IMG/VR virus record: IMGVR_UViG_3300027759_000046
Location: 124,001-188,000 of that record
Reading direction: 5' to 3' (one strand)
DNA length: 64,000 nt
The notes under the pieces were generated by a model. The model ran no database searches. It had not been told where the DNA came from and saw nothing but the letters and a program-made list of their open reading frames with translations. The translations under genes and the position numbers were made by a program. Below, one piece after another: positions 9,020 through 52,560 of the stretch (positions are counted from its first letter, which is position 1; each line of letters begins with the position of its first letter).

Positions 9020-9020
9020 G

Positions 9021-9707: not shown

Positions 9708-9739
9708 AAAAAGCGGATCAACTAGGTCAATCCGCTTTT
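9708..9739. terminator. Bidirectional intrinsic terminator
   Basis: AAAAGCGGAT-N11-ATCCGCTTTT. Confidence 0.75.
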
Positions 9740-9762
9740 AAAATATTAACTAAGTAGTTCTA

Positions 9763-11100: not shown

Positions 11101-11155
11101 TTATAGTTAATTATTTTTTAGTGTTTGTATAATTTATCATAGCTTATTTATTTAT

Positions 11156-11284
11156 TTAGCAATCGTACCACGGATAATCCGAAGGAAGTAAATCATCGAA
11201 GCCAACTCCACCGCTTGTAATAAATTGCTCTGTGTCTGGAATTGCTGTTCCGGGATTGTATGCAAATGCTTTTGATATAGCTAT
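11156..11284 (-). pseudogene. Remnant of the AYNP-type virion-protein N-module
   Basis: Reads IAISKAFAYNPGTAIPDTEQFITSGG...WYDC* from ATA; resembles the N-terminus of 6209-7300; late promoter GATAAATAAC still present at 11304-11313. Confidence 0.55.
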
Positions 11285-11333
11285 CTAGATAAACTTATTT
11301 AGAGTTATTTATCAGAAGGTATGAAGGAGATAG

Positions 11334-11407
11334 TGGACCATTCAGGGCTCGAACCTGAGACCTTCGCATTATGAGTGCGCTGCTCTAACCAACTGAGCTA
11401 AAGGTCC
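11334..11407 (-). tRNA. tRNA-Ile2(CAT) (or Met)
   Basis: GGACCTT TAGCTCAGTTGGTTAGAGC; loop CTCATAA; body resembles lysidine-type Ile2. Confidence 0.85.
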
Positions 11408-11408
11408 T

Positions 11409-11493
11409 TGGTGGGAGTAGGTGGACTCGAACCACCGAACTCAGAAGAGGAGGGATTTACAGTCCCTTGCAATTGCCGCTATGCGATACTCCC
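11409..11493 (-). tRNA. tRNA-Tyr(GTA)
   Basis: AGGGA CTGTAAA TCCCT; long variable arm; CCA encoded. Confidence 0.95.
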
Positions 11494-11503
11494 AAATTAA
11501 AAT

Positions 11504-11578
11504 TGGCTGGGCGTCCAGGATTCGAACCTGGGACCGCTCGATTAACAGTCGAGAGCTCTACCGCTGAGCTAACACCCA
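11504..11578 (-). tRNA. tRNA-Asn(GTT)
   Basis: CTCGA CTGTTAA TCGAG; CCA encoded. Confidence 0.95.
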
Positions 11579-11585
11579 ATAAAAT

Positions 11586-11685
11586 AAAAGAACCTCGACC
11601 ACCATTTCAGCGCAAGCGCGTGCTTTCAACCTGGCATGAACGTTACGTCCAGATTGGTGGAGTCAGCCTCTACTAAGGTTCTTTT
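11586..11685 (-). ncRNA. Structured inter-tRNA RNA (10-bp closing stem, three-way junction)
   Basis: AAAAGAACCT/AGGTTCTTTT, CCACCA/TGGTGG, ATCTGG/CCAGGT. Confidence 0.5.
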
Positions 11686-11686
11686 G

Positions 11687-11760
11687 TCGGGGTGGCAGGA
11701 TTCGAACCTACGACCTCCACATCCCAAATGTGGCGCGATACCTGGCTACGCTACACCCCG
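11687..11760 (-). tRNA. tRNA-Pro(TGG)
   Basis: CCACA TTTGGGA TGTGG. Confidence 0.95.
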
Positions 11761-11765
11761 AAATT

Positions 11766-11841
11766 TGATACGCTTTCGCCACCTGTATGACGTATCACCG
11801 ATGCTTAAGGTCAGCCTTAACCATTAAGGGAGCCACAGGTT
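11766..11841 (-). ncRNA. Structured inter-tRNA RNA, possible pseudoknot, motif ATACGTCATAC
   Basis: ACCTGT/ACAGGT interleaved with GATACG/CGTATC; shares an 11-mer with 12242-12312. Confidence 0.5.
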
Positions 11842-11842
11842 G

Positions 11843-11915
11843 AGCGGATGGCGAGAATCGAACTCGCATCTCCAGCTTGGAAGGCTGGAGTAATAAGCCA
11901 TTATACGACATCCGC
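11843..11915 (-). tRNA. tRNA-Gly(TCC)
   Basis: CCAGC CTTCCAA GCTGG. Confidence 0.95.
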
Positions 11916-11919
11916 TTAT

Positions 11920-11995
11920 TGGAGCGGGAGACCGGGTTCGAACCGGCGACCTCAACCTTGGCAAGGTTGCGCTCTACCAACTGAGCTACTCCCGC
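11920..11995 (-). tRNA. tRNA-Gly(GCC)
   Basis: CAACC TTGCCAA GGTTG; CCA encoded. Confidence 0.95.
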
Positions 11996-11997
11996 AA

Positions 11998-12162
11998 GTG
12001 GGTGGGATCAGACGCGTTCTGCCCACCGGGACCTCGTCGTTAGCTTTCGCCAGAGCGTACCGAGACACTATCTAAATTTGACTTGAGGTAGTCACGGCCG
12101 CCTCTGATCCTCTCAAGTCTATTTCGTATCGTGGCAAAATGCGGCTCGACCCTGATACGCTG
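11998..12162 (-). ncRNA. Multi-hairpin inter-tRNA RNA
   Basis: CGTATC/GATACG, GACTTGAG/CTCAAGTC, TGGC-GAAA-GCTA, GGTGGG/CCCACC. Confidence 0.45.
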
Positions 12163-12164
12163 TG

Positions 12165-12237
12165 AGCCTCCTGCCGGGATCGAACCAGCGACCTACTGAT
12201 TACAAATCAGTTGCTCTACCATCTGAGCTAAGGAGGC
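12165..12237 (-). tRNA. tRNA-Thr(TGT)
   Basis: ACTGA TTTGTAA TCAGT. Confidence 0.95.
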
Positions 12238-12241
12238 AATT

Positions 12242-12312
12242 AAAATAGAGTATGACGTATGCCGAGTTATGGTGTTAGTGTGTCACCTCACTCAAACGGT
12301 TCTCTCTACTTT
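12242..12312 (-). ncRNA. Hairpin RNA with ATACGTCATAC internal loop
   Basis: AAAGTAGAG/CTCTATTTT, CCG/CGG, GAGT/ACTC, GGTG/CACC. Confidence 0.5.
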
Positions 12313-12313
12313 G

Positions 12314-12387
12314 TGGAGAATAACGGATTCGAACCGTTGACCCCCTGCGTGCAAGGCAGGTGCTCTAGCCAGCTGAGCTAATTCCCC
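12314..12387 (-). tRNA. tRNA-Ala(TGC)
   Basis: CCTGC CTTGCAC GCAGG; G3-U70. Confidence 0.95.
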
Positions 12388-12390
12388 ATT

Positions 12391-12532
12391 TAAGAACAAC
12401 TTTGGAGTACCCGTCTCGCTCCAATCTTAACAGCTTCATCAGAGTTTTCTCTGGGCCCAGGCTGAGGGTGGTGAACTCTTGATCCGACCGTGATTGTCGA
12501 CATCACATTGGCCGGAGAGACAGTTGTTCTTA
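12391..12532 (-). ncRNA. Multibranch structured RNA with 11-bp closing stem
   Basis: TAAGAACAACT/AGTTGTTCTTA; inner GTGAT/ATCAC, AGAGTT/AACTCT, TTGGAG/CTCCAA. Confidence 0.55.
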
Positions 12533-12533
12533 G

Positions 12534-12605
12534 TAGCCCGTACGAGAATCGAACTCGTATTTCACCCGTGAAAGGGGCGTGTCCTAACCGTTAGACGAAC
12601 GGGCC
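12534..12605 (-). tRNA. tRNA-Glu(TTC)
   Basis: CGCCC CTTTCAC GGGTG. Confidence 0.95.
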
Positions 12606-12609
12606 AAAT

Positions 12610-12735
12610 AAAACCATAACAACTACTCTTATCCCTACTGTTATTCACAAGCCCTAATTTGTGTCAGGAGATTCGAACTCCATCCCTAGTTGTCAAGTAC
12701 ATCTTTAGAGCATTTGATGCTTCCTCTATGGCTTT
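12610..12735 (-). ncRNA. T-arm-containing structured RNA
   Basis: Ends pair (AAAGCCATA/TATGGTTTT); GACAACTA/TAGTTGTT encloses GGAG TTCGAAT CTCC and CACAA/TTGTG. Confidence 0.55.
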
Positions 12736-12736
12736 G

Positions 12737-12808
12737 CGGTCCCACCGGGAATCGAACCCGGCACTTCGCCGTGACAGGGCGATATTATAGCCGATTAACT
12801 ACAGGACC
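12737..12808 (-). tRNA. tRNA-Asp(GTC)
   Basis: TCGCC CTGTCAC GGCGA. Confidence 0.95.
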
Positions 12809-12811
12809 GTT

Positions 12812-12915
12812 TCTCTCCAGTTCACTCCTACCCTGTGGGTATACCGTGACGGGTTGTTTATCCATGCAAATCTACCTGAAGAGCAATTTGGTTTGCGCTC
12901 GACGTGCATGGATCC
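12812..12915 (-). ncRNA. Hairpin-rich spacer RNA
   Basis: ATCCATGCA/TGCATGGAT 9-bp stem enclosing GAGC/GCTC; TACCC-ACA-GGGTA. Confidence 0.4.
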
Positions 12916-12917
12916 GG

Positions 12918-13025
12918 GTGATTAGAGCCGGACTCGAACCGGATACCGTGCTGGACGGAATAGACAACCTTACCTCTTTCGAGTTGGGGACTCGGGCACC
13001 ATCCCTCATTACGCCCATCTAATCA
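12918..13025 (-). ncRNA. 108-nt tRNA-shaped RNA with non-canonical anticodon region
   Basis: TGATTAGA/TCTAATCA acceptor, GGGCG/TGCCC D-like arm, CCGG TTCGAGT CCGG T arm, CCGT/ACGG variable hairpin, ~20 extra nt. Confidence 0.6.
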
Positions 13026-13026
13026 T

Positions 13027-13104
13027 TGGTAGCGGGGGCCGGATTCGAACCGGCGATCTCTAGGTTATGAGCCTAGCGGGCTGACCAACTGCCACCACCC
13101 CGCG
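13027..13104 (-). tRNA. tRNA-fMet-like (CAT)
   Basis: CGCGGGG...CCCCGCT-A-CCA with unpaired C1:U72; CTAGG CTCATAA CCTAG. Confidence 0.9.
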
Positions 13105-13117
13105 ATATATTTTTGCG

Positions 13118-13188
13118 TTGTCCCGCAAGGATTCGAACCTCGATTCTCTGGACCAAAACCAGATGTGCTGCCATTACACCACAGGACA
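13118..13188 (-). tRNA. tRNA-Gln(TTG)
   Basis: TCTGG TTTTGGT CCAGA. Confidence 0.95.
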
Positions 13189-13200
13189 ATTTAGTATTTC

Positions 13201-13217
13201 CAACATGTCAAAGAACC
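13201..13217 (-). promoter_or_regulatory. boxA-like antitermination site GGTTCTTTGACATGTTG
   Basis: Resembles rRNA-operon boxA (E. coli TGCTCTTTAACA; GTTCTTTGACA form in other phyla); lies inside the tRNA array in sense orientation. Confidence 0.5.
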
Positions 13218-13259
13218 TAACTCTCTAAGTATAGACTAATATACTATAGTTTAGAGCTT

Positions 13260-13333
13260 TGGCACGAGTGGAGAGATTCGAACTCCCATCAACGGTTTTG
13301 GAGACCGGCATGCTACCATTGCACCACACACGT
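13260..13333 (-). tRNA. tRNA-Trp(CCA)
   Basis: CCGGT CTCCAAA ACCGT; CCA end encoded. Confidence 0.9.
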
Positions 13334-13341
13334 GTATTTTT

Positions 13342-13419
13342 TGGTTGCGGGACCCGGACTCGAACCGGGAACTTCAGCTTATGAGACTGACGAGATGACC
13401 ACTTTCTACGCATCCCGCA
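13342..13419 (-). tRNA. tRNA-Met(CAT)
   Basis: TGCGGGA/TCCCGCA fully paired; TCAGT CTCATAA GCTGA; CCA encoded. Confidence 0.9.
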
Positions 13420-13424
13420 ATGTT

Positions 13425-13501
13425 TGGTTGGAATAATAGGACTCGAACCTATAACCTTTCGCGTATCAGGCGAGCGCTCTAACCAATTGAGCTATATTCC
13501 A
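13425..13501 (-). tRNA. tRNA-Ile(GAT)
   Basis: TCGC CTGATAC GCGA; CCA encoded. Confidence 0.9.
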
Positions 13502-13506
13502 GTATG

Positions 13507-13580
13507 TGTCCCCGACAGGACTCGAACCTGTGACTCCCTCATTAAAAGTGAGGTGCTCTAACCAACTGAGCTACGAAGAC
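13507..13580 (-). tRNA. tRNA-Lys(TTT)
   Basis: CCTCA CTTTTAA TGAGG. Confidence 0.95.
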
Positions 13581-13659
13581 ATATTGTTTTGCCTGTAACC
13601 CATATTGGTTAGCAGGTCTTTATCGTTTTCGTTTCATATCTTTATACATTTTTTTTCTG

Positions 13660-13732
13660 TGGTGAGGGGCGGGATCGAACCGCCGACACCAGGATTTTCA
13701 GTCCTGTGCTCTACCTTCTGAGCTACCTCACC
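13660..13732 (-). tRNA. tRNA-Phe(GAA)
   Basis: CAGGA CTGAAAA TCCTG; first tRNA of the array in transcription order. Confidence 0.95.
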
Positions 13733-13737
13733 CTGCT

Positions 13738-13773
13738 AAAACAAAAAACCTCGAATTTTTTAGGTTCGAGGTT
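13738..13773 (-). terminator. Intrinsic terminator immediately 5' of the tRNA array
   Basis: AACCTCGAA-N9-TTCGAGGTT followed by TTTTGTTTT, ending ~5 nt before tRNA-Phe. Confidence 0.85.
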
Positions 13774-13797
13774 CTGTGTTTCATAGTTAATATTTCC

Positions 13798-13929
13798 TTA
13801 ACTTAATCCGCTTGAACCTCGCAATACCCCAAAATCTTTAATCGTCTCCATTGCATTCACAGTAGCTGTGCCTGCCGGATACTGATTCCAGTTCTGAGAA
13901 ATTTTTGATATGTTCGCGTAGTTTTGCAC
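13798..13929 (-). CDS. Putative 43-aa leader peptide (MQNYANISKISQNWNQYPAGTATVNAMETIKDFGVLRGSSGLS)
   Basis: GTG start after A-rich AAAAAACTTAAAAC; its 3' codons contain CGAGGTTC (13814-13821), complementary to the terminator 5' arm. Confidence 0.6.
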   Translation of the reverse strand: MQNYANISKISQNWNQYPAGTATVNAMETIKDFGVLRGSSGLS

Positions 13930-13948
13930 GTTTTAAGTTTTTTGTTTA

Positions 13949-13991
13949 GTTATTTATAAATCTATTATACCAACTTTTTGAAAAAAGGTTT
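13949..13991 (-). promoter_or_regulatory. Tandem promoters for the tRNA operon: class II (AAACC-N17-TATAAT) and T4-late-like TATAAATA
   Basis: TATAAT at 13964-13969; TATAAATAAC at 13949-13958. Confidence 0.65.
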
Positions 13992-14577
13992 AGCTATTTT
14001 TTTCAATGATGTAAATTACATCAGAATAAATTTGTTCCATGTCTAATTCGCTTGCTCCCAAATGTTCAAGTGAAAATCCGTGATCTGGTACCAATTCATT
14101 GAATTCTCTAGACGGTCCACTACGCTCAAAAAATTCGCCATGGACCATGATTTCGCCAGATCTTAGAATTTCAAGCCTGAGTTGTGCATAAATTTGCTCC
14201 CAGTTGTATTCCATTTGTTGACGGCATGCATCTTCGTATTCGTAATCAGTCATTTGACCGTCTTCATTGTCGATTAGACTCTCTTGACCAAGCATCTCAA
14301 TTGCATCAGCTTGCGAACCTGTACTCAATACTTCTTCGTCAAACGTAGTTGAAAACCAATTCGCTAAATCGTAATCGTAATCAAAACCAGATTGAGCAGA
14401 CGTCAACAAGTCATCTTGTGATATCCAGATTGAAGACTCGCCGCTCTCTTGTGCAAGCTTAGCAGCTCGATGCGTTAGTCTAACTAGATCAGACGTCAAT
14501 CCCAAATCAGCAAGACGCCCTAGTCGATCTTCGTTTTCGGTTATGAATTCGTTAAATCTTTTAAGGGACCTCTTCAT
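13990..14577 (-). CDS. Acidic protein with capsid-targeting-like N-terminus and RLxxLGL tag
   Basis: MKRSLKRFNEFITE-NEDRLGRLADLGL. Confidence 0.75.
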   Translation of the reverse strand: MKRSLKRFNEFITENEDRLGRLADLGLTSDLVRLTHRAAKLAQESGESSIWISQDDLLTSAQSGFDYDYDLANWFSTTFDEEVLSTGSQADAIEMLGQESLIDNEDGQMTDYEYEDACRQQMEYNWEQIYAQLRLEILRSGEIMVHGEFFERSGPSREFNELVPDHGFSLEHLGASELDMEQIYSDVIYIIEKNS

Positions 14578-15237
14578 TTAGTATCGGCGTAATTTGGCCA
14601 ATGCTCTCTTAGCCTCTTCACCGCGCTGACGAATTTGATCTTTCTCTTCTTGTGACATGTTCTTGTATTGAGCATGAGTCGGATCATCTCCCCAACGTTC
14701 TAAGTGCTCCATATCTCTAACCCATTGTGTGTAATTACTAACTAAATCTTCAATGCTATCTCCTTCTTCGTTACGACCGTTTCGGTATGGGTAGTTAGAG
14801 TAACTGCCTCTTTTACGAAAGCCGTACTCATACAATTCGTCGTTTGGCTCGTATTCGTCCTCGTCATAGTATATGTCGGCTGGATCAAATCGCTCTTGTA
14901 CTGCTCTAGTAAAGGCAGTATCCTTTTGTAAGAAATCAATCGCTGCATCAATTTCAGCCTGATCGTTTGTTTCAACGTATTCATCTCCTTCAGCTACCGC
15001 CAATTCAATGTCAACGATTGTAAAATCTGAAATTCCGTAGAAGTCTCCAAGTTCATGGAATCCATGGCCTTCTTCTCTTTGGGATGGTGTGTATTCTGTT
15101 TCGCCTTCTACTTCAGCCGTGCAAATGTAATCACGACCGTCCATTGTGAATTCAAACTCGCTAATTGTAATAGTGTGAGATCTGCCGTGTCTAGATTCGT
15201 TTACGAATTGGCCGAATTTTGCTACAAAGTTCTTCAT
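14578..15237 (-). CDS. Acidic protein with capsid-targeting-like N-terminus
   Basis: MKNFVAKFGQFVNE. Confidence 0.75.
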   Translation of the reverse strand: MKNFVAKFGQFVNESRHGRSHTITISEFEFTMDGRDYICTAEVEGETEYTPSQREEGHGFHELGDFYGISDFTIVDIELAVAEGDEYVETNDQAEIDAAIDFLQKDTAFTRAVQERFDPADIYYDEDEYEPNDELYEYGFRKRGSYSNYPYRNGRNEEGDSIEDLVSNYTQWVRDMEHLERWGDDPTHAQYKNMSQEEKDQIRQRGEEAKRALAKLRRY

Positions 15238-15255
15238 TAAATAGTATCTTTCTTG

Positions 15256-15516
15256 TTATTTATCCAAGACTCGGTTCACTACTTCGATAGAAACATGCCC
15301 GTCTGCTAAATCCTTTTTAATTTTAACAGTCATTTCGGAATGACCTCTAATGAATAGAACATCGTCAACTACATCCTGTAAATCGTCAGAGCATAATTTC
15401 GGATGTACTATTCCAGGTTGGTAAGGATCAGTCTCAATCTTCTCGGTGAATTCTGCCAGCAGTCTTTTTAATTCCGCTTGCTCAGCCTTGCTTCTTAATT
15501 CTGAACCCTTTAACAT
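15256..15516 (-). CDS. Hypothetical protein
   Basis: 86-aa ORF in operon. Confidence 0.7.
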   Translation of the reverse strand: MLKGSELRSKAEQAELKRLLAEFTEKIETDPYQPGIVHPKLCSDDLQDVVDDVLFIRGHSEMTVKIKKDLADGHVSIEVVNRVLDK

Positions 15517-15517
15517 A

Positions 15518-16171
15518 TTATCCTACGTATTTTGCAAAGTTAACGGCTGCTTCTTGAGCCTCTTCGTATGTCTTGATTGTTTTAGAACCGCGAAGCCTAA
15601 ACGGAATGTGACCTACTGCCCATTCATTTAGGGTCTGGCCTTCTGGGATTGTGTCCAAGTGTTTTGTGAAGTACCTTTCGTATTGCAATAGATCTTCGTC
15701 AGCTGGAACCCAGCTTGCATCAAATAATTTATCGCCCTTACCGAAAGCTTGTGCAGCTCGGTGTGAGTAGCCAACCCATTGTTTAGTTGCTTTCTTCCAG
15801 GCAGTATGCGTGTGTGTTCCCTTCTTGGCAATAAGGCCAGCTGTATAGTACCAGTGACCTCTTGCAAGATCACCAACGTATCCTCCGTCTGGGTGCATGC
15901 ATGAGTTAGGCAAAGTATATGAATCTCCTTCTGGTCCAAACACATGATCTTCAACCAAAAGGCCTGTTGTATTACGAATAGTCTCGATCACTTCAGGGTT
16001 TGGAATAAACTCAAAACCTTCTTCAGTTTTAGTTGAATAAACTCGACTTACTAATTTAGTAAAGCCTAGATTTATATGTACTCGATTTAATCTACTTGTA
16101 CCTGAGTACTCTGGATACTTTTCAAATTTTAACTTGATTTTGCCTAGATACGGCGTGTGATTTTTAATCAT
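15518..16171 (-). CDS. Hypothetical protein
   Basis: 217-aa ORF, WVGYSHRA motif. Confidence 0.75.
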   Translation of the reverse strand: MIKNHTPYLGKIKLKFEKYPEYSGTSRLNRVHINLGFTKLVSRVYSTKTEEGFEFIPNPEVIETIRNTTGLLVEDHVFGPEGDSYTLPNSCMHPDGGYVGDLARGHWYYTAGLIAKKGTHTHTAWKKATKQWVGYSHRAAQAFGKGDKLFDASWVPADEDLLQYERYFTKHLDTIPEGQTLNEWAVGHIPFRLRGSKTIKTYEEAQEAAVNFAKYVG

Positions 16172-16191
16172 CTCTTTTATTTGTTTTTAGT

Positions 16192-16279
16192 TGGCGGAAG
16201 ATGTAGGATTCGAACCTACGGTACCTTGCAGTACAACAGTTTTCAAGACTGCCGCGATCGACCACTCTGCCAATCTTCC
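16192..16279 (-). tRNA. tRNA-Ser(TGA)
   Basis: GCAGT CTTGAAA ACTGT; long variable arm; CCA encoded. Confidence 0.95.
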
Positions 16280-29651: not shown

Positions 29652-31340
29652 TTAGTAACCGTAGTCGTCTTCGTCGTCTTCTGAATAGTTCTTGTTGTCC
29701 CAAGTGTATTCAAGATCGTCAGTATCGTGGTTGCGAGTAATACCGTATTCTCTTTCATATTCACGAGCGTTCTCTGAATAGAAATCCCATAGACCCATTG
29801 CATCGTCTTCATGATGAATCGAATCCATGTAATCTTTGTATTCTGCTCTAAGCATCCTCATGAATTCGGAGAGAGTTGTTGCCTTTGGATCGTCAACCAA
29901 TCCCAATTGCTTAAGGCGTCCAATATTGTTTTGACGATTCTCTTTTAACATCTGTGAAAGTCTTTCAACCTCTTTAAAGTCTCTAGCATCGAGTGCTTGA
30001 TCAATTAGATCTTGGATCTCAGTCTGACTAAGTTCTCTATCTTCCGGCTCTTCAGCTTGGAAGCTTGGGAAATCCTGATCTTCAGGTTCTTCAGCATACT
30101 GATCTTCAGCATACGGATCTTCGTAATTAGCAGAGTCAACTGAGTCTTGCCAATCCTGAAGTTCTTGTTTAATTATTTGAATCAGCTTACGAACTTTGAC
30201 TTGAGCCTTTGGCATAGCCTCTTCAGCCGCAGTGATTTCAGCCTCAGTGTATTGAGGCTCTCTTTCGCCTGGCGTTCTGTATAATGGAGCCGCTGTAAAT
30301 ATTAAATTCATTAGCTCAAGGAATTCTTTGTCAGGTATTAGATTTGCATCAATCATTTTACCCCAAACGTATTCACGACCATTTTCAATATCATCAACTT
30401 CCGAAAAAGACTGGATAAAATCTCTAAGATCTGCTGCGGTTAATTTAGCACGCTTTAGGTCTTGAACCTCGTCTTGTGCAGTATCAGTATTCATAAATAC
30501 TTTAGCAATAACTTCATCACTAAGATGTGCAAGACCTCGCTGATTAATTATTCCGTAAATTGCCTTGATTGCCTCGTGGAATAGCATTGCCTGGTCTAGA
30601 CCCAAAATGGTTAAAGTTGGAGAAGTTTGAACCTCCTCAGCGGAGTCTTCAGTCTCTTCAGACTCTTGCTCTTCTTCTTGCTCTTCCTTTGCTTTAATTG
30701 GTTTCCATTCAATCTTAGATATTCCGCTTAATCCATCGCCCATTTCAATCATGCGAGCGCCTACCTCTTCTGGGATTCTCCAGTCGCGAGCATTACAAAT
30801 ATCAGTAATCATAACCAATAGCTCAACCATCTTGTTGGCATTGGCTTCGCCGAATAGTTGAGTTAATCCATTTACGTTAGTATCGCCCATTAACATCTTC
30901 TTGGAATTAATGGCCTCGCCTTGCGCAATCATGTTCATGATCTTACGCTTGTAAATTGCATTCTTTGTATCTTCGTCTTCAATATCTTTAAACGATGGCA
31001 TCTCCGGTTTTTCATCAGATTTTTCCTGATCCATCTTTTGTTTCATTTCACGTTGGTCGGTCGGGATTCTGATGTCTAATTCGGTGCCTTCTAAAATTAG
31101 TCCGTATTTTTCCATGATAACTTCTCGAGTTAGATCCTCAATCTGTTTCTCTTTACCGCGTTGCATCATCTGTACTTGACCAACGGCTCTCATTAAAGAG
31201 CCCATGTCGCGACCGTATTTGGCCTCAACCTCTCTTGCGCTCTGTTCAGCACGTTGATTTAAGGAATTTAAGTATTCTGGCGAAATCGCGGGATTACCCT
31301 TGATATCCGCTTCGTTTAAGAATTGTTTAAAGCTCTTCAT
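29652..31340 (-). CDS. Large acidic protein with capsid-targeting-like N-terminus
   Basis: MKSFKQFLNE; internal LKE-NRQNNIGRLKQLGLVDD. Confidence 0.8.
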   Translation of the reverse strand: MKSFKQFLNEADIKGNPAISPEYLNSLNQRAEQSAREVEAKYGRDMGSLMRAVGQVQMMQRGKEKQIEDLTREVIMEKYGLILEGTELDIRIPTDQREMKQKMDQEKSDEKPEMPSFKDIEDEDTKNAIYKRKIMNMIAQGEAINSKKMLMGDTNVNGLTQLFGEANANKMVELLVMITDICNARDWRIPEEVGARMIEMGDGLSGISKIEWKPIKAKEEQEEEQESEETEDSAEEVQTSPTLTILGLDQAMLFHEAIKAIYGIINQRGLAHLSDEVIAKVFMNTDTAQDEVQDLKRAKLTAADLRDFIQSFSEVDDIENGREYVWGKMIDANLIPDKEFLELMNLIFTAAPLYRTPGEREPQYTEAEITAAEEAMPKAQVKVRKLIQIIKQELQDWQDSVDSANYEDPYAEDQYAEEPEDQDFPSFQAEEPEDRELSQTEIQDLIDQALDARDFKEVERLSQMLKENRQNNIGRLKQLGLVDDPKATTLSEFMRMLRAEYKDYMDSIHHEDDAMGLWDFYSENAREYEREYGITRNHDTDDLEYTWDNKNYSEDDEDDYGY

Positions 31341-33895: not shown

Positions 33896-34663
33896 TTAAA
33901 AATCTTCGCTTCCCATTTTTGTTTGCGGGTCAGAATAGATTGCGGAATAGGCATTTGAACCTGCGTCTATCAATCTTTCTAACCAACCTGTATTTCTGAG
34001 TCTCTTGAAAACAAGATTCTCTATTGAGAACTCGCCGTCTTTTGCAAGACCGTCTTTACGAGCTTTCATAATTTTTTCTTTTAAGACTTTGACACGATCG
34101 GCTAAGCCTCTAGCATCTTCAGAATCAGATCGCTTGATCATCTTCTCAATCTCTTCGATCTCAGTCATAAATGCTTCAGCTTTTCTAGATACATCTTGCG
34201 GATCAACGGTTGGCGGATTCCATTTAGGTTTTACAATCCATTCAGCTTTGAGTAGAGAATAGAGACCTGATGCAATGTGGGGTTCATTCACGTCCTGCGC
34301 ATAGAGCTCAACGTCATGTCTGCGAATCACGACTGGGTGTCGCAAGTTCCAAACGAAACGCTGACCGTCCAGCCCTTTCTTTACTAGCTCTGTGTCCTCG
34401 CTAATCTGCGAGAAGTCTAGTAGCACGTGAACGTCTAAGTCCGAGTTCTCGGTCCAAGTGTAGTTCGCAATTGAGCCAGTTAATTGAATATCGGAGATTG
34501 GAACTTCAATCTTAAGATCTGTGTAGAAATCGTCTGCAATCTGCAGAAGTTTCGTTCTAACCTCCGGATTAAACTCTTCACCGTTCCAAAATGCTGGATG
34601 CAAGCCCTTTTGATAGAACTCGCTCTCATTTATAAAATCTGTAAATTTGTTTAAATATCTCAT
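33896..34663 (-). CDS. Pol-beta-superfamily nucleotidyltransferase with CTS-like N-terminus
   Basis: MRYLNKFTDFINE; LTGSIAN...SDLDVH (GS-DxD); VELY. Confidence 0.8.
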   Translation of the reverse strand: MRYLNKFTDFINESEFYQKGLHPAFWNGEEFNPEVRTKLLQIADDFYTDLKIEVPISDIQLTGSIANYTWTENSDLDVHVLLDFSQISEDTELVKKGLDGQRFVWNLRHPVVIRRHDVELYAQDVNEPHIASGLYSLLKAEWIVKPKWNPPTVDPQDVSRKAEAFMTEIEEIEKMIKRSDSEDARGLADRVKVLKEKIMKARKDGLAKDGEFSIENLVFKRLRNTGWLERLIDAGSNAYSAIYSDPQTKMGSEDF

Positions 34664-45811: not shown

Positions 45812-46060
45812 TTATTTATCGTCGAGCCACGCAGATAATAGGCACACGGCAAACCAGATTCCATTGACCGCTAGAATAATCCAGAGTAGGGGCCATGCGA
45901 AACTCCAGCCTGCATAGGCTTCTGAATTTGATCGCCAATCATCGTCGTCTTGCTGCCCGTCATAGACATCAATACCTAGCGGGCTCTTGAACCTGTGTAG
46001 TAGAAATAGGGTTATTAGGTAGCCGACTGAATAGACAGCTAAGATATTGAATGCTGTCAT
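45812..46060 (-). CDS. Two-TM membrane protein
   Basis: Hydrophobic helices; WPL motif. Confidence 0.65.
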   Translation of the reverse strand: MTAFNILAVYSVGYLITLFLLHRFKSPLGIDVYDGQQDDDDWRSNSEAYAGWSFAWPLLWIILAVNGIWFAVCLLSAWLDDK

Positions 46061-46063
46061 GGT

Positions 46064-46471
46064 CTACTTGTGTTTTGTGCTCGTGAAACCCCTAATTACT
46101 TGACCGACTCTGTACCTGTTATCTGAATAGAACATGATGCCGCATTCAGTTACGTAGGCATACGGTGGCATCTCTCTGGTACCAATCACTTCGGCTATTG
46201 TACAGTCAAAGTGTTTCTCAGTCGTATCGATGGGCGGCGCGATGGTCTCCTCATAGGTTGACTTGCCGTTTGGTTGGCTCGTGATCGTTGTGCCTTGACT
46301 CGTGAAGTAATGGGAATTGCCGTCATTGAACCTGTACATGCGAATGCCATCGTATTCAAACAGGAACTCGATCTTGATATCGTTGCCGACCGTTGTTGTG
46401 GATTGCGGATCATGGTAGCACGAACTCAAGAGGCTCAGTGCGAGTAGAGAAAAGATTAGAGTATTTTTCAT
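46064..46471 (-). CDS. Lipoprotein (DUF4884-like)
   Basis: Start MKNTLIF (ATG 46471), LLSSC lipobox, EFLFEYDG.RMYRF.DG. Confidence 0.7.
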   Translation of the reverse strand: MKNTLIFSLLALSLLSSCYHDPQSTTTVGNDIKIEFLFEYDGIRMYRFNDGNSHYFTSQGTTITSQPNGKSTYEETIAPPIDTTEKHFDCTIAEVIGTREMPPYAYVTECGIMFYSDNRYRVGQVIRGFTSTKHK

Positions 46472-46481
46472 TGTGCTTGGA

Positions 46482-46748
46482 TTACGAATTAAGTTGTACT
46501 GAGACCCAAATACCAAGATAGGAACCAATCACGGAGCCGGTAACGTAACCGATCCATTGGTGTAGAGCCTCCTCGCTGCGGGCGATCTTGCGGATAATAA
46601 AGAAAGACAGCGTGGCCAACATGAAATCAGTTAGTGCAGCTGAATGGTATTGAGTTGTTGCAACTGCTCGGTAATTAATACACAAGAGCGAGTAACTAAC
46701 GATCTGTATTGCGGCCAGTAACAAGGCCTCTTTGATTTTTTGTTTCAT
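46482..46748 (-). CDS. Three-TM membrane protein
   Basis: Hydrophobic profile. Confidence 0.7.
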   Translation of the reverse strand: MKQKIKEALLLAAIQIVSYSLLCINYRAVATTQYHSAALTDFMLATLSFFIIRKIARSEEALHQWIGYVTGSVIGSYLGIWVSVQLNS

Positions 46749-47609: not shown

Positions 47610-48434
47610 CTAGGCAGTCTTAACGATATCAGCTAGGGTCTTGGCTCTAGCGCCGACCTGTTTCGCCCAGTCCGAGTTTAGCATCTCCGATGAGGCAGCA
47701 CTGAAATTTTGTTGTTTGATTTGGGCTAGAAAGTTCGTGAAGGCCGAGAGACCCTTTTTACCAAGATTGAAAACCATTTCGGTTATAACTCCCTGCACGG
47801 CAGGCGGTAGAGAAGGTAGAGTTGGCACAAGCTCCTGTGCATCAGCCTTGGCCTGACCAAGATCGGTCAGTAGCAGCGAGTCTATTTGGGCCTGAGTTAA
47901 TGATGAGGTTCCGGCCTTGATCTTTTCGGGATTGGCTCCAACCTTTTTTAGTTGGGCAACAGCGTCTTCACGGTTAAGATTGAAACCTACACCAACTGTT
48001 GGAATCTGCCTGGAGTCTAGATACTTAACGGGCTTGGAACCCTCATGACGGATAACTCGGTCCTTGATTGAGGCAATGATTGGGTCGGTCGTTGGCGGCG
48101 GTGCAGTAAACGAATTCAGGTACCGTTCGGCCCCAATGGTCTTGACGTGGGTCATGATCTGATTACGGAAGCCAGAGTCCAGGATTCCAAGCTCGCCGTT
48201 GACCGCGTCGCCCACACTTGGATAGGCCCATGCTCTCTGCTGATCGTCATGCCCTGCCTTTAGGGCCTGATTGACCTTGACAAAAGAGGCAGCATCCGGA
48301 ATCTGGCGGATTGCCGAGACCAGACTCTCCTCGTCCGTGCCGAGTCCTGAGACTGCGGTCTGAATCTGTGCTGCCAGCTGGTCAGCAGTCGCGGCCTCGT
48401 TTAGCCAGCTCTCAAATAGGTTAATGTGTTTCAT
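47610..48434 (-). CDS. CTS-like peptide + annexin-like repeat + T4-type (GH24) lysozyme
   Basis: MKHINLFESWLNE; AVSGLGTDEESLV...SVGDAVNGELG; RHEG...YLD...PTVGVGFN...EMVFNLG...SDWAKQVGARA. Confidence 0.85.
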   Translation of the reverse strand: MKHINLFESWLNEAATADQLAAQIQTAVSGLGTDEESLVSAIRQIPDAASFVKVNQALKAGHDDQQRAWAYPSVGDAVNGELGILDSGFRNQIMTHVKTIGAERYLNSFTAPPPTTDPIIASIKDRVIRHEGSKPVKYLDSRQIPTVGVGFNLNREDAVAQLKKVGANPEKIKAGTSSLTQAQIDSLLLTDLGQAKADAQELVPTLPSLPPAVQGVITEMVFNLGKKGLSAFTNFLAQIKQQNFSAASSEMLNSDWAKQVGARAKTLADIVKTA

Positions 48435-48453
48435 TGTTAATAGTTGTCTGTGA

Positions 48454-48918
48454 TTAGCGAGCGTATCGCTTCAAGGTCTGTGCTGCCGCAGCTGGCGTCA
48501 CGTTGCGCCAAGTAACTCGGTTTGAAATCTCCTGTGCCAAGTCGTCGATCGTCATGCTCTGATCTTGCATGAATCTGTCAACAAGCTCTGCAACCTCTTC
48601 GCTGCCACGGTTGAAGTACTCGTCTGCTAGCACCATCTCCAAATTATCTGGACGGTTGCGGTACTTTGCTGCGGTCTGAGCATTACGACCTCCGTTAACA
48701 TCAGCCTCGCGCCAGTCTCTAGTACGAGCCGAGACCCTGTCAAAACGATCGCGATCAGCGGGTTTCATGGCCTCGTAATCGTCCACTATATCTAGCAGGT
48801 CCTGGTACGAGCCATCGTCCGCGCCACTACTATGGCTGTGGGCTCTACGCAGTAGGTCATGGGCTGGGTTGCTGCCCTCGGCTAGGAATTCGGTAAAGCG
48901 TTTAACTTGTGTCTTCAT
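48454..48918 (-). CDS. Protein with CTS-like N-terminus
   Basis: MKTQVKRFTEFLAE (compare T4 IPIII MKTYQEFIAE). Confidence 0.8.
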   Translation of the reverse strand: MKTQVKRFTEFLAEGSNPAHDLLRRAHSHSSGADDGSYQDLLDIVDDYEAMKPADRDRFDRVSARTRDWREADVNGGRNAQTAAKYRNRPDNLEMVLADEYFNRGSEEVAELVDRFMQDQSMTIDDLAQEISNRVTWRNVTPAAAAQTLKRYAR

Positions 48919-48942
48919 CTGTTAATATTTGTTTTTATCTGA

Positions 48943-49473
48943 TTATTTATCTAAATCTGAGTCCAGCATATAGGCTGCATCGTGGTCTTCGCCTCTCCAC
49001 CAGACTGCACGGGCTCCGCTGCGTTGGTCAAGCCAAACCTCAAGGTCAATCGAGCCAAAGTTCTCTTGCGCAATGATCTCAGCGGACTCGGCCTGCACAA
49101 GATCTTGCTGGTCATCGAGCGCAAAGAGACCGGGTAACGAGCGCACGAGCGCCTTGAATCTGGGCATGTCGTGCCAGGTCGTTGCAGTTGTATTGAAGAC
49201 CTCGACCACCTGTTCCAGAGGTAGAACCTGCAGTACGGCGGCCTGATCCGCCAAGCCAAGCGCCTGCAGTCGAGCCGCAGCCGGGCCAAGCTCAAGGCCC
49301 AGCACCTTGCACGCCCACAGAGCGGAGTCAACCGTGTCCAGATAGTAGTTGACATCGTTGTCCAGCTGGACGGCCATCAGCTCTTCCGAAAAGTTATCCG
49401 GATTGACGACATCTCGGAGCGTTGCAATATCGTGCTCACGCGCGTAGTTCTCAAATAGTTTAAGGTGCTTCAT
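48943..49473 (-). CDS. Protein with CTS-like N-terminus and RLxxLGL tag
   Basis: MKHLKLFENY; ARLQALGLAD; late promoter at 49477-49486. Confidence 0.75.
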   Translation of the reverse strand: MKHLKLFENYAREHDIATLRDVVNPDNFSEELMAVQLDNDVNYYLDTVDSALWACKVLGLELGPAAARLQALGLADQAAVLQVLPLEQVVEVFNTTATTWHDMPRFKALVRSLPGLFALDDQQDLVQAESAEIIAQENFGSIDLEVWLDQRSGARAVWWRGEDHDAAYMLDSDLDK

Positions 49474-49573
49474 GCTTTTATTTATTCGATAGGTAGACCC
49501 GGTTCCAGGCCTTTTCGAGCCTCAAGACTCCGGTGCGCGCCCTACAACAATTAGGTAAAGATACCCAGTCTAC

Positions 49574-49666
49574 TTATACTAGAAAAAAGATAAAGATACA
49601 AGACAACACTACAGCCAGACCTATAGGCCAGACCCAACTCCATTCTATCTTACAAGTTCTTTTCAT
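49574..49666 (-). CDS. 30-aa membrane peptide (not in ORF track)
   Basis: MKRTCKIEWSWVWPIGLAVVLSCIFIFFLV after GAGTATATTAG. Confidence 0.45.
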   Translation of the reverse strand: MKRTCKIEWSWVWPIGLAVVLSCIFIFFLV

Positions 49667-49698
49667 AAGCCTAATATACTCTATACCCGGTAACCGGG

Positions 49699-49879
49699 AC
49701 TAGGGAGTACCTGGCAACCTGACCAGCCTCCAGACCCTATAGACCCAGACACGGGACTAGGGAGTAACCCCGAACCCTGAGCCAGACCCCAGACTCGCCT
49801 GACCCCGATGGGACTAGGGAGTGCCGGGCAGCCAGCCGCCCTTGGGGTACCTGCTCGGCCTGCTTAAACACTAGGGAGT
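49699..49879 (+). repeat. Array of four ACTAGGGAGT sites at exact 57-bp period
   Basis: Starts at 49699, 49756, 49813, 49870; 47-bp intervening sequences diverged. Confidence 0.95.
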
Positions 49880-50013
49880 ACGGTGACCCCCTCGGCCTCG
49901 CCGGAAACTCTGGACTCCAGGGTCTCGCGGGGCCGGGGATGCCGAGACTATAGGGACTGGACGGGACATGGGGATCCGCGGAGTCTCGGCAGACCGGGTA
50001 TAAATAAGTCTAT

Positions 50014-50682
50014 ATGGAAACACGCGATACACAAGACGGAGCCGAGGATAACAGAGATTACCTTGCGCCCGGCCACGGACCTACTGGCAATCTGGTCTAT
50101 AAGAAAGATGCAGCTCGGTACCTAGGTATAAGCCTTAAGACTCTAGAGCGCTATGTGAAACAGGGTCTGGTCAAGCCCTTTAAGAACGAGGTAAACGGCC
50201 GAACCTACTTTGACCAGCTGGATCTACTAGCCTTACTAGGGAGTAGACTACCCCAAGAACGAGAGGTTGTGCTGTACTGCCGGGCTGCGGGGATTCCGGA
50301 TCAGGGTAAAGCCGGCGTATCCAGCCAGGCCAGACTGCGAGACCAGGTAGACCGCTGTACCGAGTACTGTACCAAGGCTGGGGTCCGGGTCGATCGTATA
50401 ATCCAAGAGATTGGAAAGGGGCACACCCTGAATGGTCGCAGCGGGATTGACCAATTGCTGGATTTAGTGTTCCGAAAGAAGGTATCAATGATCGTGATCG
50501 AGTGCCCGGATCGTCTGGCTCGTTGGGGCATGGGCGAGGTCTTGGAGAGATTCCTGACCTGGCACGGTGTAGAGCTGCATGTTATAAACAAGGGCTGGTC
50601 ACGTGCCGAATTCCGCGAAGAGGTAAAAGAAGATCTTGCGGGAATCCTATTCGAGGCGAAACGCCTGCTAGGAGAAGCTTAA
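50014..50682 (+). CDS. IS607 TnpA-like serine recombinase (HTH + resolvase fold), catalytic Ser apparently lost
   Basis: AARYLGIS.KTL.RY...G HTH; YCRAA in place of YxRVS; EIGKG...GR; DRLARWG; no adjacent tnpB; promoter TATAAATA at 49999-50006. Confidence 0.85.
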   Translation: METRDTQDGAEDNRDYLAPGHGPTGNLVYKKDAARYLGISLKTLERYVKQGLVKPFKNEVNGRTYFDQLDLLALLGSRLPQEREVVLYCRAAGIPDQGKAGVSSQARLRDQVDRCTEYCTKAGVRVDRIIQEIGKGHTLNGRSGIDQLLDLVFRKKVSMIVIECPDRLARWGMGEVLERFLTWHGVELHVINKGWSRAEFREEVKEDLAGILFEAKRLLGEA

Positions 50683-51053
50683 CTAAATATTGTTGGATTA
50701 CGGCGGCCCCATTCTCTGAGCAAGACGCCAGCCTGGGAGTTTGCCTCGTTCTCTATGTCAGATCCGTCGGCACCGTCCAAGACCTTGCCGCTGTCGCGCT
50801 GATGATGGTGTACCAATTCATGGGCCAAGGTTCTGTACCAGTCTGCACGGACTCTGGTTCCGCGAAGAACCCAGATCTCATTGGACTGTGGATTAAAGTA
50901 TCCCATTGACTTATTTAACATAGCCTCCCTATGGTCATCAGAAATGTGGATCGTTGGGGTGCTGGTCCAGCCTAACTGCTGACGACAGAAGTGTACGAAC
51001 TCCTCTAATTCGGAGTCTTCCTGCCATTCACGGGATTCTTTAATGTATTTCAT
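50679..51053 (-). CDS. HExxH metallopeptidase-like protein with CTS-like start
   Basis: MKYIKE; TLAHELVHH...E.EAN..AG; late promoter at 51057-51066. Confidence 0.75.
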   Translation of the reverse strand: MKYIKESREWQEDSELEEFVHFCRQQLGWTSTPTIHISDDHREAMLNKSMGYFNPQSNEIWVLRGTRVRADWYRTLAHELVHHHQRDSGKVLDGADGSDIENEANSQAGVLLREWGRRNPTIFS

Positions 51054-51249
51054 ATAGTTATTTATTCATGGAGTTCTCAGCGAACCCCAGAAATGTGACC
51101 TTTGTACCTGTCTCGGGGTTTCCCCCAGCACGGGGCGAGCTCCAGAGCCCATGCCAGGTCGGCACGGCCCCGGGGCTTTGGGCGCCTTATTCTAATATAC
51201 CATTTTGCCCATCATTCGGCAATTAAATAATAAAAAAATAAGATACGTT

Positions 51250-51384
51250 ATGGCTAAACAGATTATTGCAAGACTCCACCTTGCTAAACCCAAAGTAAAG
51301 AAACCCGGCGTACACGCCAAGTCCGGTTCCTCTCGCAACAAGAGATCCAAGAACTACAAGAAGCCCAACGTTGGACAGGGCTAA
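51250..51384 (+). CDS. Small highly basic protein (44 aa, not in ORF track)
   Basis: MAKQIIARLHLAKPKVKKPGVHAKSGSSRNKRSKNYKKPNVGQG. Confidence 0.65.
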   Translation: MAKQIIARLHLAKPKVKKPGVHAKSGSSRNKRSKNYKKPNVGQG

Positions 51385-51389
51385 ACCCA

Positions 51390-51421
51390 AAAAAGGGACT
51401 CCACTAGGGAGTCCCTCTCTT
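51390..51421. terminator. Bidirectional terminator containing an ACTAGGGAGT copy
   Basis: AAAAAAGGGACTCC-ACTAG-GGAGTCCCT. Confidence 0.75.
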
Positions 51422-51441
51422 CATTAACCAATTAACCTTTC

Positions 51442-52560
51442 CTAGATAGCAGCTAGGTCTGCGTGTTGTAGATCCCAAGTCTTAGCGAATAGATTTCCAC
51501 CGTCGACCTTGAAACGTTTTGAGTTCTCGAAGTTGAAGATCGACTGGTGACTTCCAATCCATGTCAACTCGTTAACTACATCCCATACAGTAGCATCAGT
51601 CTTGATAAACTTCTTCTGTGCGTCTGTTAGGGTCAATGGGTTGTGGCCCTTACGGAAGATACGTTTTGTTGCCGCATCGTATTCTGGAAAGAACTGTTGT
51701 TCTGCTGCCTTGATTAGGTGAGCCTTCATGTCAGGATTTTCTTCCTTGATCTGGCCAGTTACTGAGTACATCGCTCGCTCTAATTCTCCGTAGCTTGCAC
51801 GTGTTGTCATCGCTGTTTCCAATCTGTCTTGGAAAGTTCTTGGTACAAATCCTACCTTTGCCCAACCGTTCATGCTCGTTAAGAGTTCGCGGAAAGCGTC
51901 TTGGCCTTTACCAAACTCGAATGCTGTATTCAAGTTTCTGGCTACTGCACCGTTTGCGCAGCTTAGGCGTAAGAAGAAGTCGTCTACTCTTGAGTTGATA
52001 TTGGAGTTTACTAGGGAGATCCCGAAGCGGAACACCTCGTCCTTACCGATCTTCTCAAAGCCTACTTGACTGCCGTGGATGAGGTTGATACTTAAGCCGT
52101 TCTTGCCGCCATGGTCGATTGACTCTACATGCATGTCGGGGATCTCGTTAAGGATCGTCTCCGCCGTGTTGAATAGGGTCTCATTGCTTAGACGATGGTA
52201 ACGATCTGCCTTTACGATATCGCCAACTTCGCGTTTGTCCGCATCGCCGATAAGTAAGAACTCTTTTGAACCGTCACGCGTTTCTGAATAGGCTTTAACT
52301 GCCTGTAATAGTTTGGTCGCGACAGCTCTGTCCTCGTTCTTGTCCATGCGGCTAAGCAACGTGGATTGGATATTGACTGCCTGTCCCAAGCGGTTGAAGA
52401 ACCTGTTAGAGACTGGGATACGTGCGCCATCGATAAAGATGCATCCGTTCTTGATTGAACTATCGTCGATCTGAATATCAGATAACTTAACTCGCTTTGT
52501 TAGCGGATCCTGTCCTGCGAGATTTGCTTTGCTTTCGCTAAATTGACTTTGATTAATCAT
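51442..52560 (-). CDS. DUF932/DUF945-like protein
   Basis: Y.RLSN, FGISLVNS and LRLSCANG motifs. Confidence 0.6.
   Translation of the reverse strand: MINQSQFSESKANLAGQDPLTKRVKLSDIQIDDSSIKNGCIFIDGARIPVSNRFFNRLGQAVNIQSTLLSRMDKNEDRAVATKLLQAVKAYSETRDGSKEFLLIGDADKREVGDIVKADRYHRLSNETLFNTAETILNEIPDMHVESIDHGGKNGLSINLIHGSQVGFEKIGKDEVFRFGISLVNSNINSRVDDFFLRLSCANGAVARNLNTAFEFGKGQDAFRELLTSMNGWAKVGFVPRTFQDRLETAMTTRASYGELERAMYSVTGQIKEENPDMKAHLIKAAEQQFFPEYDAATKRIFRKGHNPLTLTDAQKKFIKTDATVWDVVNELTWIGSHQSIFNFENSKRFKVDGGNLFAKTWDLQHADLAAI

Follow-up and report, generated by a model that had tools for sequence, protein, structure and literature searches.

A putative annexin-repeat/T4-type lysozyme fusion with a capsid-targeting-type leader in a distantly T4-like freshwater phage

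We analyzed a window of 64,000 nucleotides from a viral genome (IMG/VR record IMGVR_UViG_3300027759_000046, positions 124,001 to 188,000) and, within it, one gene on the minus strand at 47610..48434 (coordinates are those of the window unless stated otherwise). The gene is an intact open reading frame (ORF) under translation table 11 and encodes a protein of 274 amino acids (aa), P0001, in which an N-terminal tag is followed by an annexin repeat, a linker and a GH24 muramidase domain. We read it as a peptidoglycan hydrolase that would be delivered by the virion of a 253-kb freshwater T4-like phage, and we hold this reading at somewhat less than an even chance. The domain assignments and the resemblance of the tag to a T4 sequence, on which the reading is built, stand on firmer ground and are presented first.

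The whole record, of which the window is one part, spans 253,137 bp with 39% G+C, is approximately 94% complete and encodes 315 predicted proteins, leaving 7% of the genome non-coding. The phage is a freshwater phage of the T4-like type, to which it is only distantly related. Its genome encodes a T4-type (gp23-type) capsid protein (PF07068, E-value 9.2e-43) and a T4-type prohead protease of the S77 family (PF03420, E-value 1.1e-9, over its cut-off). The capsid protein is closest to those of uncultured huge phages (39.6% identity) and then to those of the Lak phages of Prevotella (33%). Because of this last resemblance, the sequence hints at a host among the Bacteroidota. The stretch recurs in freshwater and lake metagenomes of several studies, and a near-identity DNA search of cultured phages against 40-50 kb of the record returned no match; no relative in culture was identified. 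When the 274-aa protein was compared with phages by tblastn, only the GH24 half was recovered, with no record covering at least 80% of the protein. We found approximately 75 clusters of full-length homologues, all metagenomic, 42-76% identical in a word search and named 'lysozyme' at most. Across these clusters, the N-terminal domain is conserved as strongly as the enzyme domain.

The C-terminal domain (aa 123-274; 47613..48068, minus strand, as are all parts of this gene) can safely be predicted to be a GH24 muramidase of the T4-lysozyme type with an intact Glu/Asp/Thr triad. The Pfam family PF00959 matches aa 129-267 with an E-value of 4e-10 and 40.5 bits, compared to a curated cut-off of 22.3, and when searched genome-wide (41.8 bits) this is its sole match in the 253 kb. 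BLASTP against T4 gpe (from NC_000866) returns 26% identity (E-value 1e-11) and aligns D140 with T4 D20 and T146 with T4 T26. Since the spacing to D140 is identical, E131 corresponds to T4 E11, and the triad E131-D140-T146 maintains the distances of 9 and 6 residues that separate E11, D20 and T26 in T4. Among 25 relatives, E131 and D140 are invariant and T146 is at least 90% conserved. The PHROG matches on this half of the protein belong to endolysin, tail-lysozyme and 'internal virion lysozyme motif' (E-value 5.7e-6) families. The enzyme domain is basic, with an isoelectric point (pI) of 9.6, and the annexin repeat is acidic (pI 4.7). The two are joined by a Pro-rich linker (aa 104-122, 48069..48125, with FTAPPPTTDP at aa 109-118), the length of which differs between relatives. 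A preliminary description of the gene, based on the sequence alone, had reported a GLGTDE annexin signature, a downstream S..D....E.G segment, a Pro-rich linker and a GH24 domain with the E/D/T triad. All of them are present: the signature lies at aa 30-35, the segment corresponds to S73, D76, E81 and G83, and the linker and the triad are those just described.

The domain that precedes the linker (aa 14-103, 48126..48395) carries the endonexin motif of the AB loop, G30-L-G32-T33-D-E35 (48330..48347), and the segment E81-L-G-I-L-D86 (48177..48194), which covers the end of helix D and the DE loop and includes E81 and D86 as candidate Ca2+-capping acids. Because the window protein itself does not match Pfam Annexin (PF00191), even at an E-value of 10, we examined its relation to annexins at the level of the family. 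PF00191 is matched directly by three of the 17 relatives, with a best E-value of 1.9e-4. We built a profile from the N-terminal domains of 17 sequences taken from viral loci and searched it against 177,635 PDB sequences. The 60 matches listed are exclusively annexins, with annexin VI (E-value 5.4e-13), annexin XII (5.9e-8) and annexin III (1e-7) as the best, a resemblance that greatly exceeds chance. In the HMMER alignment, GxGTDE falls on the annexin AB loop and E81 on the glutamate of AIENE in repeat 3 of annexin XII. A21, G32, T33, E35, N55, Y71, E81 and D86 are invariant in 76 sequences and G30 is nearly so.

Structure prediction points in the same direction. An AlphaFold2 model of aa 1-116, derived from 76 aligned sequences, has a mean predicted local distance difference test score (pLDDT) of 85.6, falling to approximately 71 in the linker where the model ends, and consists of five helices, with the helix of the tag continuing into helix A of the annexin repeat. 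In an all-against-all comparison with VIA-align, annexin-family chains fill nine of the first 11 ranks. They include alpha-14 giardin (Z 8.6, 2.3 Å over 76 aa, 25% identity), annexin VI (Z 8.5), an annexin A2 fusion (Z 8.5) and domain 1 of annexin I (Z 7.3), all 73 residues of which are covered. Foldseek, which the preliminary description had named as a check on its annexin fold, returned annexins III, IV, XII, V and VI as top rows at probability 0.97, though with E-values of approximately 0.5. Some of these results count against a homology with annexins. The window sequence has no Pfam match, no Foldseek match to the PDB reaches an E-value of 0.001 or better, and a Z of approximately 8 is not decisive by itself for a helical domain. 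Moreover, T33 and E81 are separated by 42-48 positions in the family, most often 43, while the canonical annexin spacing from GT to the capping acid is 39. It is the combination of the Z values with the sequence statistics that makes the assignment decisive, and the profile, the AlphaFold2 model and VIA-align all favor the fold that had been proposed. On the family profile and the predicted structure, aa 14-103 are a true homologue of the annexin repeat, present as a single copy; the four-repeat core of eukaryotic annexins is absent.

The conserved residues G32, T33, E35, E81 and D86 are candidate positions for Ca2+ ligands. We take E81 and D86 to be equivalent to the type II cap and the DE-loop acid, for which repeat 1 of annexin V uses E72 and E78. 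In 54 out of 70 sequences, the x position of GxGT is filled by L, I or M. Bacterial annexins also have a hydrophobic residue at x of GxGTD, and some are fused with lipase (PMC3894181). The protein could be packaged or otherwise associated with the virion while its repeat works as a helical adaptor for peptidoglycan, lipopolysaccharide or a virion or scaffold protein, and not for Ca2+ and lipid. We consider this unlikely. The repeat is indeed divergent, as the window sequence misses Pfam Annexin and has an insertion of 4-9 residues before the capping acid, a single repeat offers just one convex face, and the known N-terminal domains of large-phage endolysins bind peptidoglycan. However, the most conserved positions are exactly those of the annexin Ca2+ site (GxGT(D)E, E81 and D86), and the hydrophobic x is that of the bacterial annexins (PMC3894181). 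A putative α/β-hydrolase or esterase, described below, carries the module as well, much as bacterial annexins are joined to lipase (PMC3894181), and both associations fit a lipid surface.

The tag (MKHINLFESWLNE, aa 1-13, 48396..48434) contains two L-x-E sites, L6-F-E8 and L11-N-E13, and the 7-mer F7-E-S-W-L-N-E13. M1 and F7 are invariant in the relatives, and E8 and W10 are at least 90% conserved. We searched the proteome of the phage for similar leaders with two patterns, which were both defined after inspecting the data, so that the resulting statistics are somewhat inflated: a strict regular expression matches 16 out of 315 N-termini and only 2 out of 1446 internal Met positions (shuffle mean 0.08), and the 7-mer [FYW]xx[FYW][LIV]xE occurs 50 times, compared to 10.8 in shuffles. 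In 22 of the 315 proteins, which are otherwise unrelated, the 7-mer begins no later than residue 10 (shuffle mean 0.45, maximum 3). The leader is more frequent than chance would allow. The strict expression was built without using either the scaffold repeats or the T4 match reported below. Tags of different genes differ by synonymous codons, which argues for selection at the level of the peptide.

The same form recurs in a head component of the phage. An ORF outside the window (loci L001 and L003; G000 64429..66450, minus strand) couples a Peptidase_S77 domain of the T4 gp21 type to a C-terminal scaffold-like region, in which seven [YF]xxY[LIV]xE repeats follow each other in tandem with a period of 14 aa. 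The ORF lies directly upstream of the gp23-type capsid gene, and its nested scaffold start is preceded by the late-promoter-like motif ATAAATAA. Given the S77 domain and the position next to the capsid gene, we read this single frame as prohead protease plus scaffold, the latter with a predicted nested start of its own. The leader seems to have been copied from the repeat of the scaffold. It also has a counterpart in T4, since IPII and IPIII in the T4 record both begin with MKTYQEFIAE, whose Y-Q-E-F-I-A-E fits the 7-mer. Two of the tagged proteins, starting with MKSFKQFLNE and MKTFSQFINE, match T4 position by position, and the leader of the lysozyme is a form three residues longer than that of T4, which also holds L6-F-E8. 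The ten-residue leader of T4 is sufficient for packaging into the scaffold core, and foreign proteins fused to it are packed and then delivered into cells (PMC9026906, PMC3012670, PMC10229621). Residues 4 and 7 of the T4 leader serve targeting, and residues 8 and 10 serve cleavage by gp21 (PMC9026906). By analogy, aa 1-13 would be a leader of the capsid-targeting type, with the same form as the T4 sequence. The packaging tag that the preliminary description had proposed is therefore supported by its enrichment at N-termini, its repetition in the scaffold and its likeness to T4.

Pfam and PHROG scans of most tagged proteins assigned no function. Within the window, a tagged protein with a nucleotidyltransferase domain (N-terminus MRYLNKFTDFINE; 33896..34663, minus strand; NTP_transf_2, E-value 1.3e-4) is a candidate injected enzyme. 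Another tagged protein, very acidic and 562 aa long (29652..31340, minus strand), starts with MKSFKQFLNEA and is one of those matching T4 position by position. It is kept beside the lysozyme in several related loci, and among phage records, two uncultured phages of 630-640 kb were the only ones to contain it.

The leader might have a different task altogether, as a protease site, as a translation-initiation context or as a tag for the tail or baseplate, with the lysozyme being associated with the tail like T4 gp5. This would account for the PHROG matches to the baseplate hub and tail lysozyme family and for the tail fibre and virion structural genes that lie 2-5 kb away. It would also agree with the failure to find a gp5-type lysozyme elsewhere in the genome, where the Gp5_OB search is uninformative, as its control likewise gave nothing. 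We nevertheless regard it as very unlikely. The tail-lysozyme matches are restricted to the GH24 domain, while the repeats of the leader motif lie in a head component, the protease-scaffold ORF, and the motif shares its form with the head-targeting sequence of T4. Synonymous variation between tags further speaks against a signal at the nucleotide level.

To describe how the N-terminal module is distributed, we scored aa 1-112 against proteins of comparable length and recovered the GH24 family and one other architecture. In the latter, represented by the protein P0088 of a relative, the tag and the annexin repeat lie ahead of a C-terminal domain (aa 125-316 and relatives) that has no Pfam family. 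The domain belongs to a family of over 700 proteins in which an EGGY.HP..M motif is invariant and which often have PG_binding_1, VanY or Amidase_2 as fusion partners. Its confident model (pLDDT 94.6) is matched all along the list by folds of the lysozyme superfamily and by related chitosanase folds, including DLP12 endolysin (Z 8.5), SagA (8.2), P22 lysozyme (8.1) and VgrG3 (8.0). Judging from the modeled fold, these proteins are probably an undescribed muramidase family.

The phage itself encodes a second protein with the tag and the annexin repeat, P0226 (305 aa; L106, G000 204439..205356, plus strand, outside the window), which is matched by the hidden Markov model of the N-terminal domain with an E-value of 2.3e-17. 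It begins with MKHLLEYKIFES and contains GAGTDEESLV and GELGVFD, and its module is 32% identical to that of the lysozyme. When searched alone against the PDB, P0226 matches annexins (annexin V, E-value 1.4e-3) and, apart from one chance row, nothing else. Its C-terminal domain has no Pfam match; its Atlas features resemble those of an α/β-hydrolase or an esterase, which is a lead only. For the N-terminal module, an Atlas feature search likewise returned leads only, the best at 0.83 and an annexin cluster at 0.76. The gene of P0226 is convergent, tail to tail, with that of a tagged CHAP protein (N-terminus MKLIKDFNQFITE; L087, P0106, G000 205353..205979, minus strand, outside the window; PF05257, E-value 9.5e-8). 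From its occurrence on GH24, P0088 and P0226, we conclude that the tag plus annexin repeat is a portable module ahead of enzymes acting on the cell envelope.

The genomic neighborhood of the lysozyme is rich in tagged genes. The gene immediately upstream (48454..48918, minus strand) is separated from the lysozyme start by 19 nucleotides and likely belongs to the same transcription unit. It encodes a tagged protein of 154 aa (N-terminus MKTQVKRFTEFLAE) with no Pfam or PHROG family. The next gene (48943..49473, minus strand) encodes a tagged protein of 176 aa (N-terminus MKHLKLFENYARE), whose homologues occur in the same clusters of related phages. Both are preceded on the minus strand by ATAAATAA, which lies 24 nucleotides before the ATG of the former (48943..48950) and 4 nucleotides before that of the latter (49478..49485). 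Genome-wide, this motif is present in 82 copies, compared to approximately 31 expected, and 63 of them touch non-coding DNA. It is found upstream of 60 out of 315 genes, mostly 15-25 nucleotides before the start codon, including the tail sheath, baseplate wedge and head-closure genes and nine of the 16 strictly tagged genes. The motif resembles the T4 late promoter TATAAATA. Given the 19-nucleotide gap and the lack of a ATAAATAA motif of its own, the lysozyme is probably the third gene of a late transcription unit. A lake-water metatranscriptomic library contains contigs identical to the window over 48056..48872, where the upstream gene is followed by the first half of the lysozyme gene, and one of them spans the junction; they are suggestive of expression, although contigs from an RNA library prove neither transcription nor a single transcript. 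The lysozyme gene resides within arrays of tagged genes in 11 out of 11 related viral loci, where the products begin with MK[YH][IL]KLFE or MKSFKQFMNE. In the related locus L026 (1392..9238), more than ten consecutive paralogous genes, with MKYIKLYE or MKYLQLYE starts, flank the lysozyme gene and represent an expansion of one family of tagged proteins.

The annexin-lysozyme might simply be the endolysin of the phage. An N-terminal binding domain followed by a C-terminal catalytic domain is a common layout in large phages of Gram-negative hosts, and in such a case the enzyme would act as an ordinary cytoplasmic endolysin released late by a holin, with a leader that is incidental or diverts a minor share to capsids. 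The protein holds the sole GH24 domain of the genome, its best PHROG matches are endolysin families, its gene lies in a late-type transcription unit, and small membrane proteins and a lipoprotein are encoded 1-2 kb downstream in the window. All the same, we give this explanation a low probability. The membrane-protein neighbors are not conserved in the 11 related loci, where instead the tagged genes are, and none of these loci has a holin or spanin as a neighbor of the lysozyme. We accordingly rejected a lysis cassette composed of the lysozyme and the downstream 3-transmembrane protein, lipoprotein and 2-transmembrane protein (45812..46748), which have no family matches and are not conserved neighbors. 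In addition, the leader is strongly conserved in all relatives, with M1 and F7 invariant, and is shared with the scaffold repeats.

A better candidate for lysis is found elsewhere in the window. A transglycosylase of the SLT family (167 aa; 5297..5800, minus strand; PF01464, E-value 4e-14) starts with a hydrophobic segment of the kind seen in exported or signal-anchor-release (SAR) enzymes. Its gene is directly preceded, with overlapping stop and start codons, by that of a 107-aa protein with one transmembrane segment (the pair occupies 5297..6123, minus strand). Judging from these sequence features, the two are probably the actual lysis pair of the phage. Among other wall enzymes, Amidase_2 was absent in the family search and Peptidase_M15_4 had a sub-threshold match only. 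Given its annexin repeat and its scaffold-type tag, the annexin-lysozyme is probably head cargo for delivery to the host envelope and not an ordinary lysis enzyme, although unpackaged copies may also act as an endolysin.

By analogy with T4, the leader would dock the protein on the scaffold core during prohead assembly, and the prohead protease would then remove it after an L-x-E site. The mature annexin-lysozyme would stay in the head and exit through the tail at infection. Once outside the Ca2+-poor cytoplasm, the annexin repeat may bind Ca2+ and anchor the enzyme on the anionic membrane surface of the host envelope. In annexins, Ca2+ is needed for bridging to anionic lipid, and for this reason the repeat would be inactive in the cytoplasm and become active in the periplasm. 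The basic muramidase domain, held at the membrane beside the wall, could then open the wall locally, with the tagged CHAP peptidase and the tagged annexin/putative α/β-hydrolase acting alongside it. The preliminary description had proposed an ejected enzyme that docks on a membrane and opens the peptidoglycan locally as the DNA enters. While its structural part (the annexin repeat, the GH24 triad and the capsid-type tag) held up, this functional proposal is consistent with the context, as the phage has a T4-type prohead protease and capsid, the tag is repeated in the scaffold, the gene has no holin or spanin neighbors in the 11 related loci, a separate SLT enzyme fits lysis, and the tag and annexin repeat occur on other envelope-type enzymes.

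Several considerations weigh against delivery from the head. Packaging and leader cleavage are argued by analogy only. Most tagged proteins are acidic, with a pI of 4-5, unlike the basic internal proteins of T4. A sole GH24 domain encoded in a late-type unit also fits an endolysin. The weakest and least supported step is that a head protein of a phage with a contractile tail reaches the periplasm, as the T4 internal proteins enter the cytoplasm together with the DNA and a muramidase would be useless there. In its most complete form, the proposal would be that large T4-like phages infecting freshwater bacteria load an annexin-muramidase, an annexin-esterase and a CHAP peptidase into the head by means of a scaffold-mimicking leader, and that the annexin repeat is a Ca2+ switch, silent in the cytoplasm of the producing cell and clamping the ejected enzymes to the host membrane at periplasmic Ca2+. 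We regard this full scenario as doubtful. If true, it would be the first annexin function in a virus and would mirror, at the bacterial envelope, what the annexin-toxin cargo does in PVC injection systems.

Among known systems, IPI, IPII, IPIII and Alt of T4 similarly share a short leader of the form aromatic, aromatic, [LIV], x, E (Y-Q-E-F-I-A-E in T4, F-E-S-W-L-N-E here). In both phages, many unrelated cargo proteins carry a common leader, in the presence of a T4-type protease and capsid protein, and their genes cluster in variable regions; in T4, ipII and ipIII adjoin the lysozyme gene e. Conversely, the cargo described here is a muramidase with an annexin repeat, while none of the T4 internal proteins is a wall hydrolase. 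The leader is 13 aa long instead of 10, the protease and the scaffold share one ORF, and the packaging is a predicted one.

T7 gp16, phiKMV gp36 and other virion-associated peptidoglycan hydrolases resemble our proposal in that a particle-borne, wall-degrading domain is used at entry. These are domains of very large core or tail proteins in podoviruses or siphoviruses, whereas here the protein stands alone with 274 aa in a T4-like myovirus. They have no annexin repeat and resemble the annexin-lysozyme in the catalytic domain only. The present phage combines a glycosidase with a CHAP peptidase. The modular endolysins of large Gram-negative phages, such as KZ144 with its N-terminal PG_binding_1, have the same order of binding module, linker and C-terminal catalytic domain. 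They differ in having a peptidoglycan-binding domain instead of an annexin repeat; the protein described here also bears a capsid-type leader and has no conserved holin or spanin context.

The closest published parallel is provided by the annexin toxins of PVC systems, in which a single annexin domain precedes an enzymatic domain, delivery is phage-tail-like, and the annexin domain was proposed to help in breaching target membranes (PMC3482391). The presence of only one repeat is common to the window protein and to bacterial single-domain annexins (PMC3894181). The PVC toxins share with it an annexin repeat N-terminal to an enzymatic domain (PMC3482391), and the bacterial annexins include fusions to lipid-active enzymes (PMC3894181). 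Compared to these proteins, the one described here is a proposed structural cargo of a phage, its enzyme is a lysozyme, and its target would be the bacterial envelope instead of a eukaryotic membrane. Its repeat also diverges further, and the capping acid lies at +42 to +48.

Annexin repeats are textbook Ca2+ and membrane modules of eukaryotes and are rare in bacteria. A search of the literature on annexin together with phage, endolysin or lysozyme found neither such a fusion nor a phage annexin domain, and the survey of bacterial annexins mentions neither phages nor lysozymes (PMC3894181). For wall hydrolases of virions and for T4-type capsid cargo, the new element is the annexin repeat, with the scaffold-mimicking leader as a useful side result. 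If the repeat binds Ca2+ and lipid, it would represent a new type of targeting module for wall hydrolases, with a possible use in engineered lysins. The result on the leader extends the capsid-targeting principle of T4 to a very distant clade of huge uncultured phages. That the leader may be a copy of the scaffold repeat suggests a capsid-targeting mechanism open to direct testing. The leader also offers a way to predict injected proteins of metagenomic phages from their sequences, and in the present genome it flags approximately 7% of the genes.

A few further features of the window were recorded. An IS607-type serine recombinase/transposase is encoded beside the tagged-gene cluster (50014..50682, plus strand; phrog_6620, E-value 1e-29), and two related loci, L026 and L034, have homologues of it close to the lysozyme cluster. 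The surrounding region, 48000..52000, is generally a stretch of 49-55% G+C, compared to the genome average of 39%, and the region of the tagged-gene cluster is possibly a mobile or recently acquired island. Elsewhere in the window, 19 tRNA genes lie within 1798..16279 on the minus strand, 17 of which form one array at 11333..13732.

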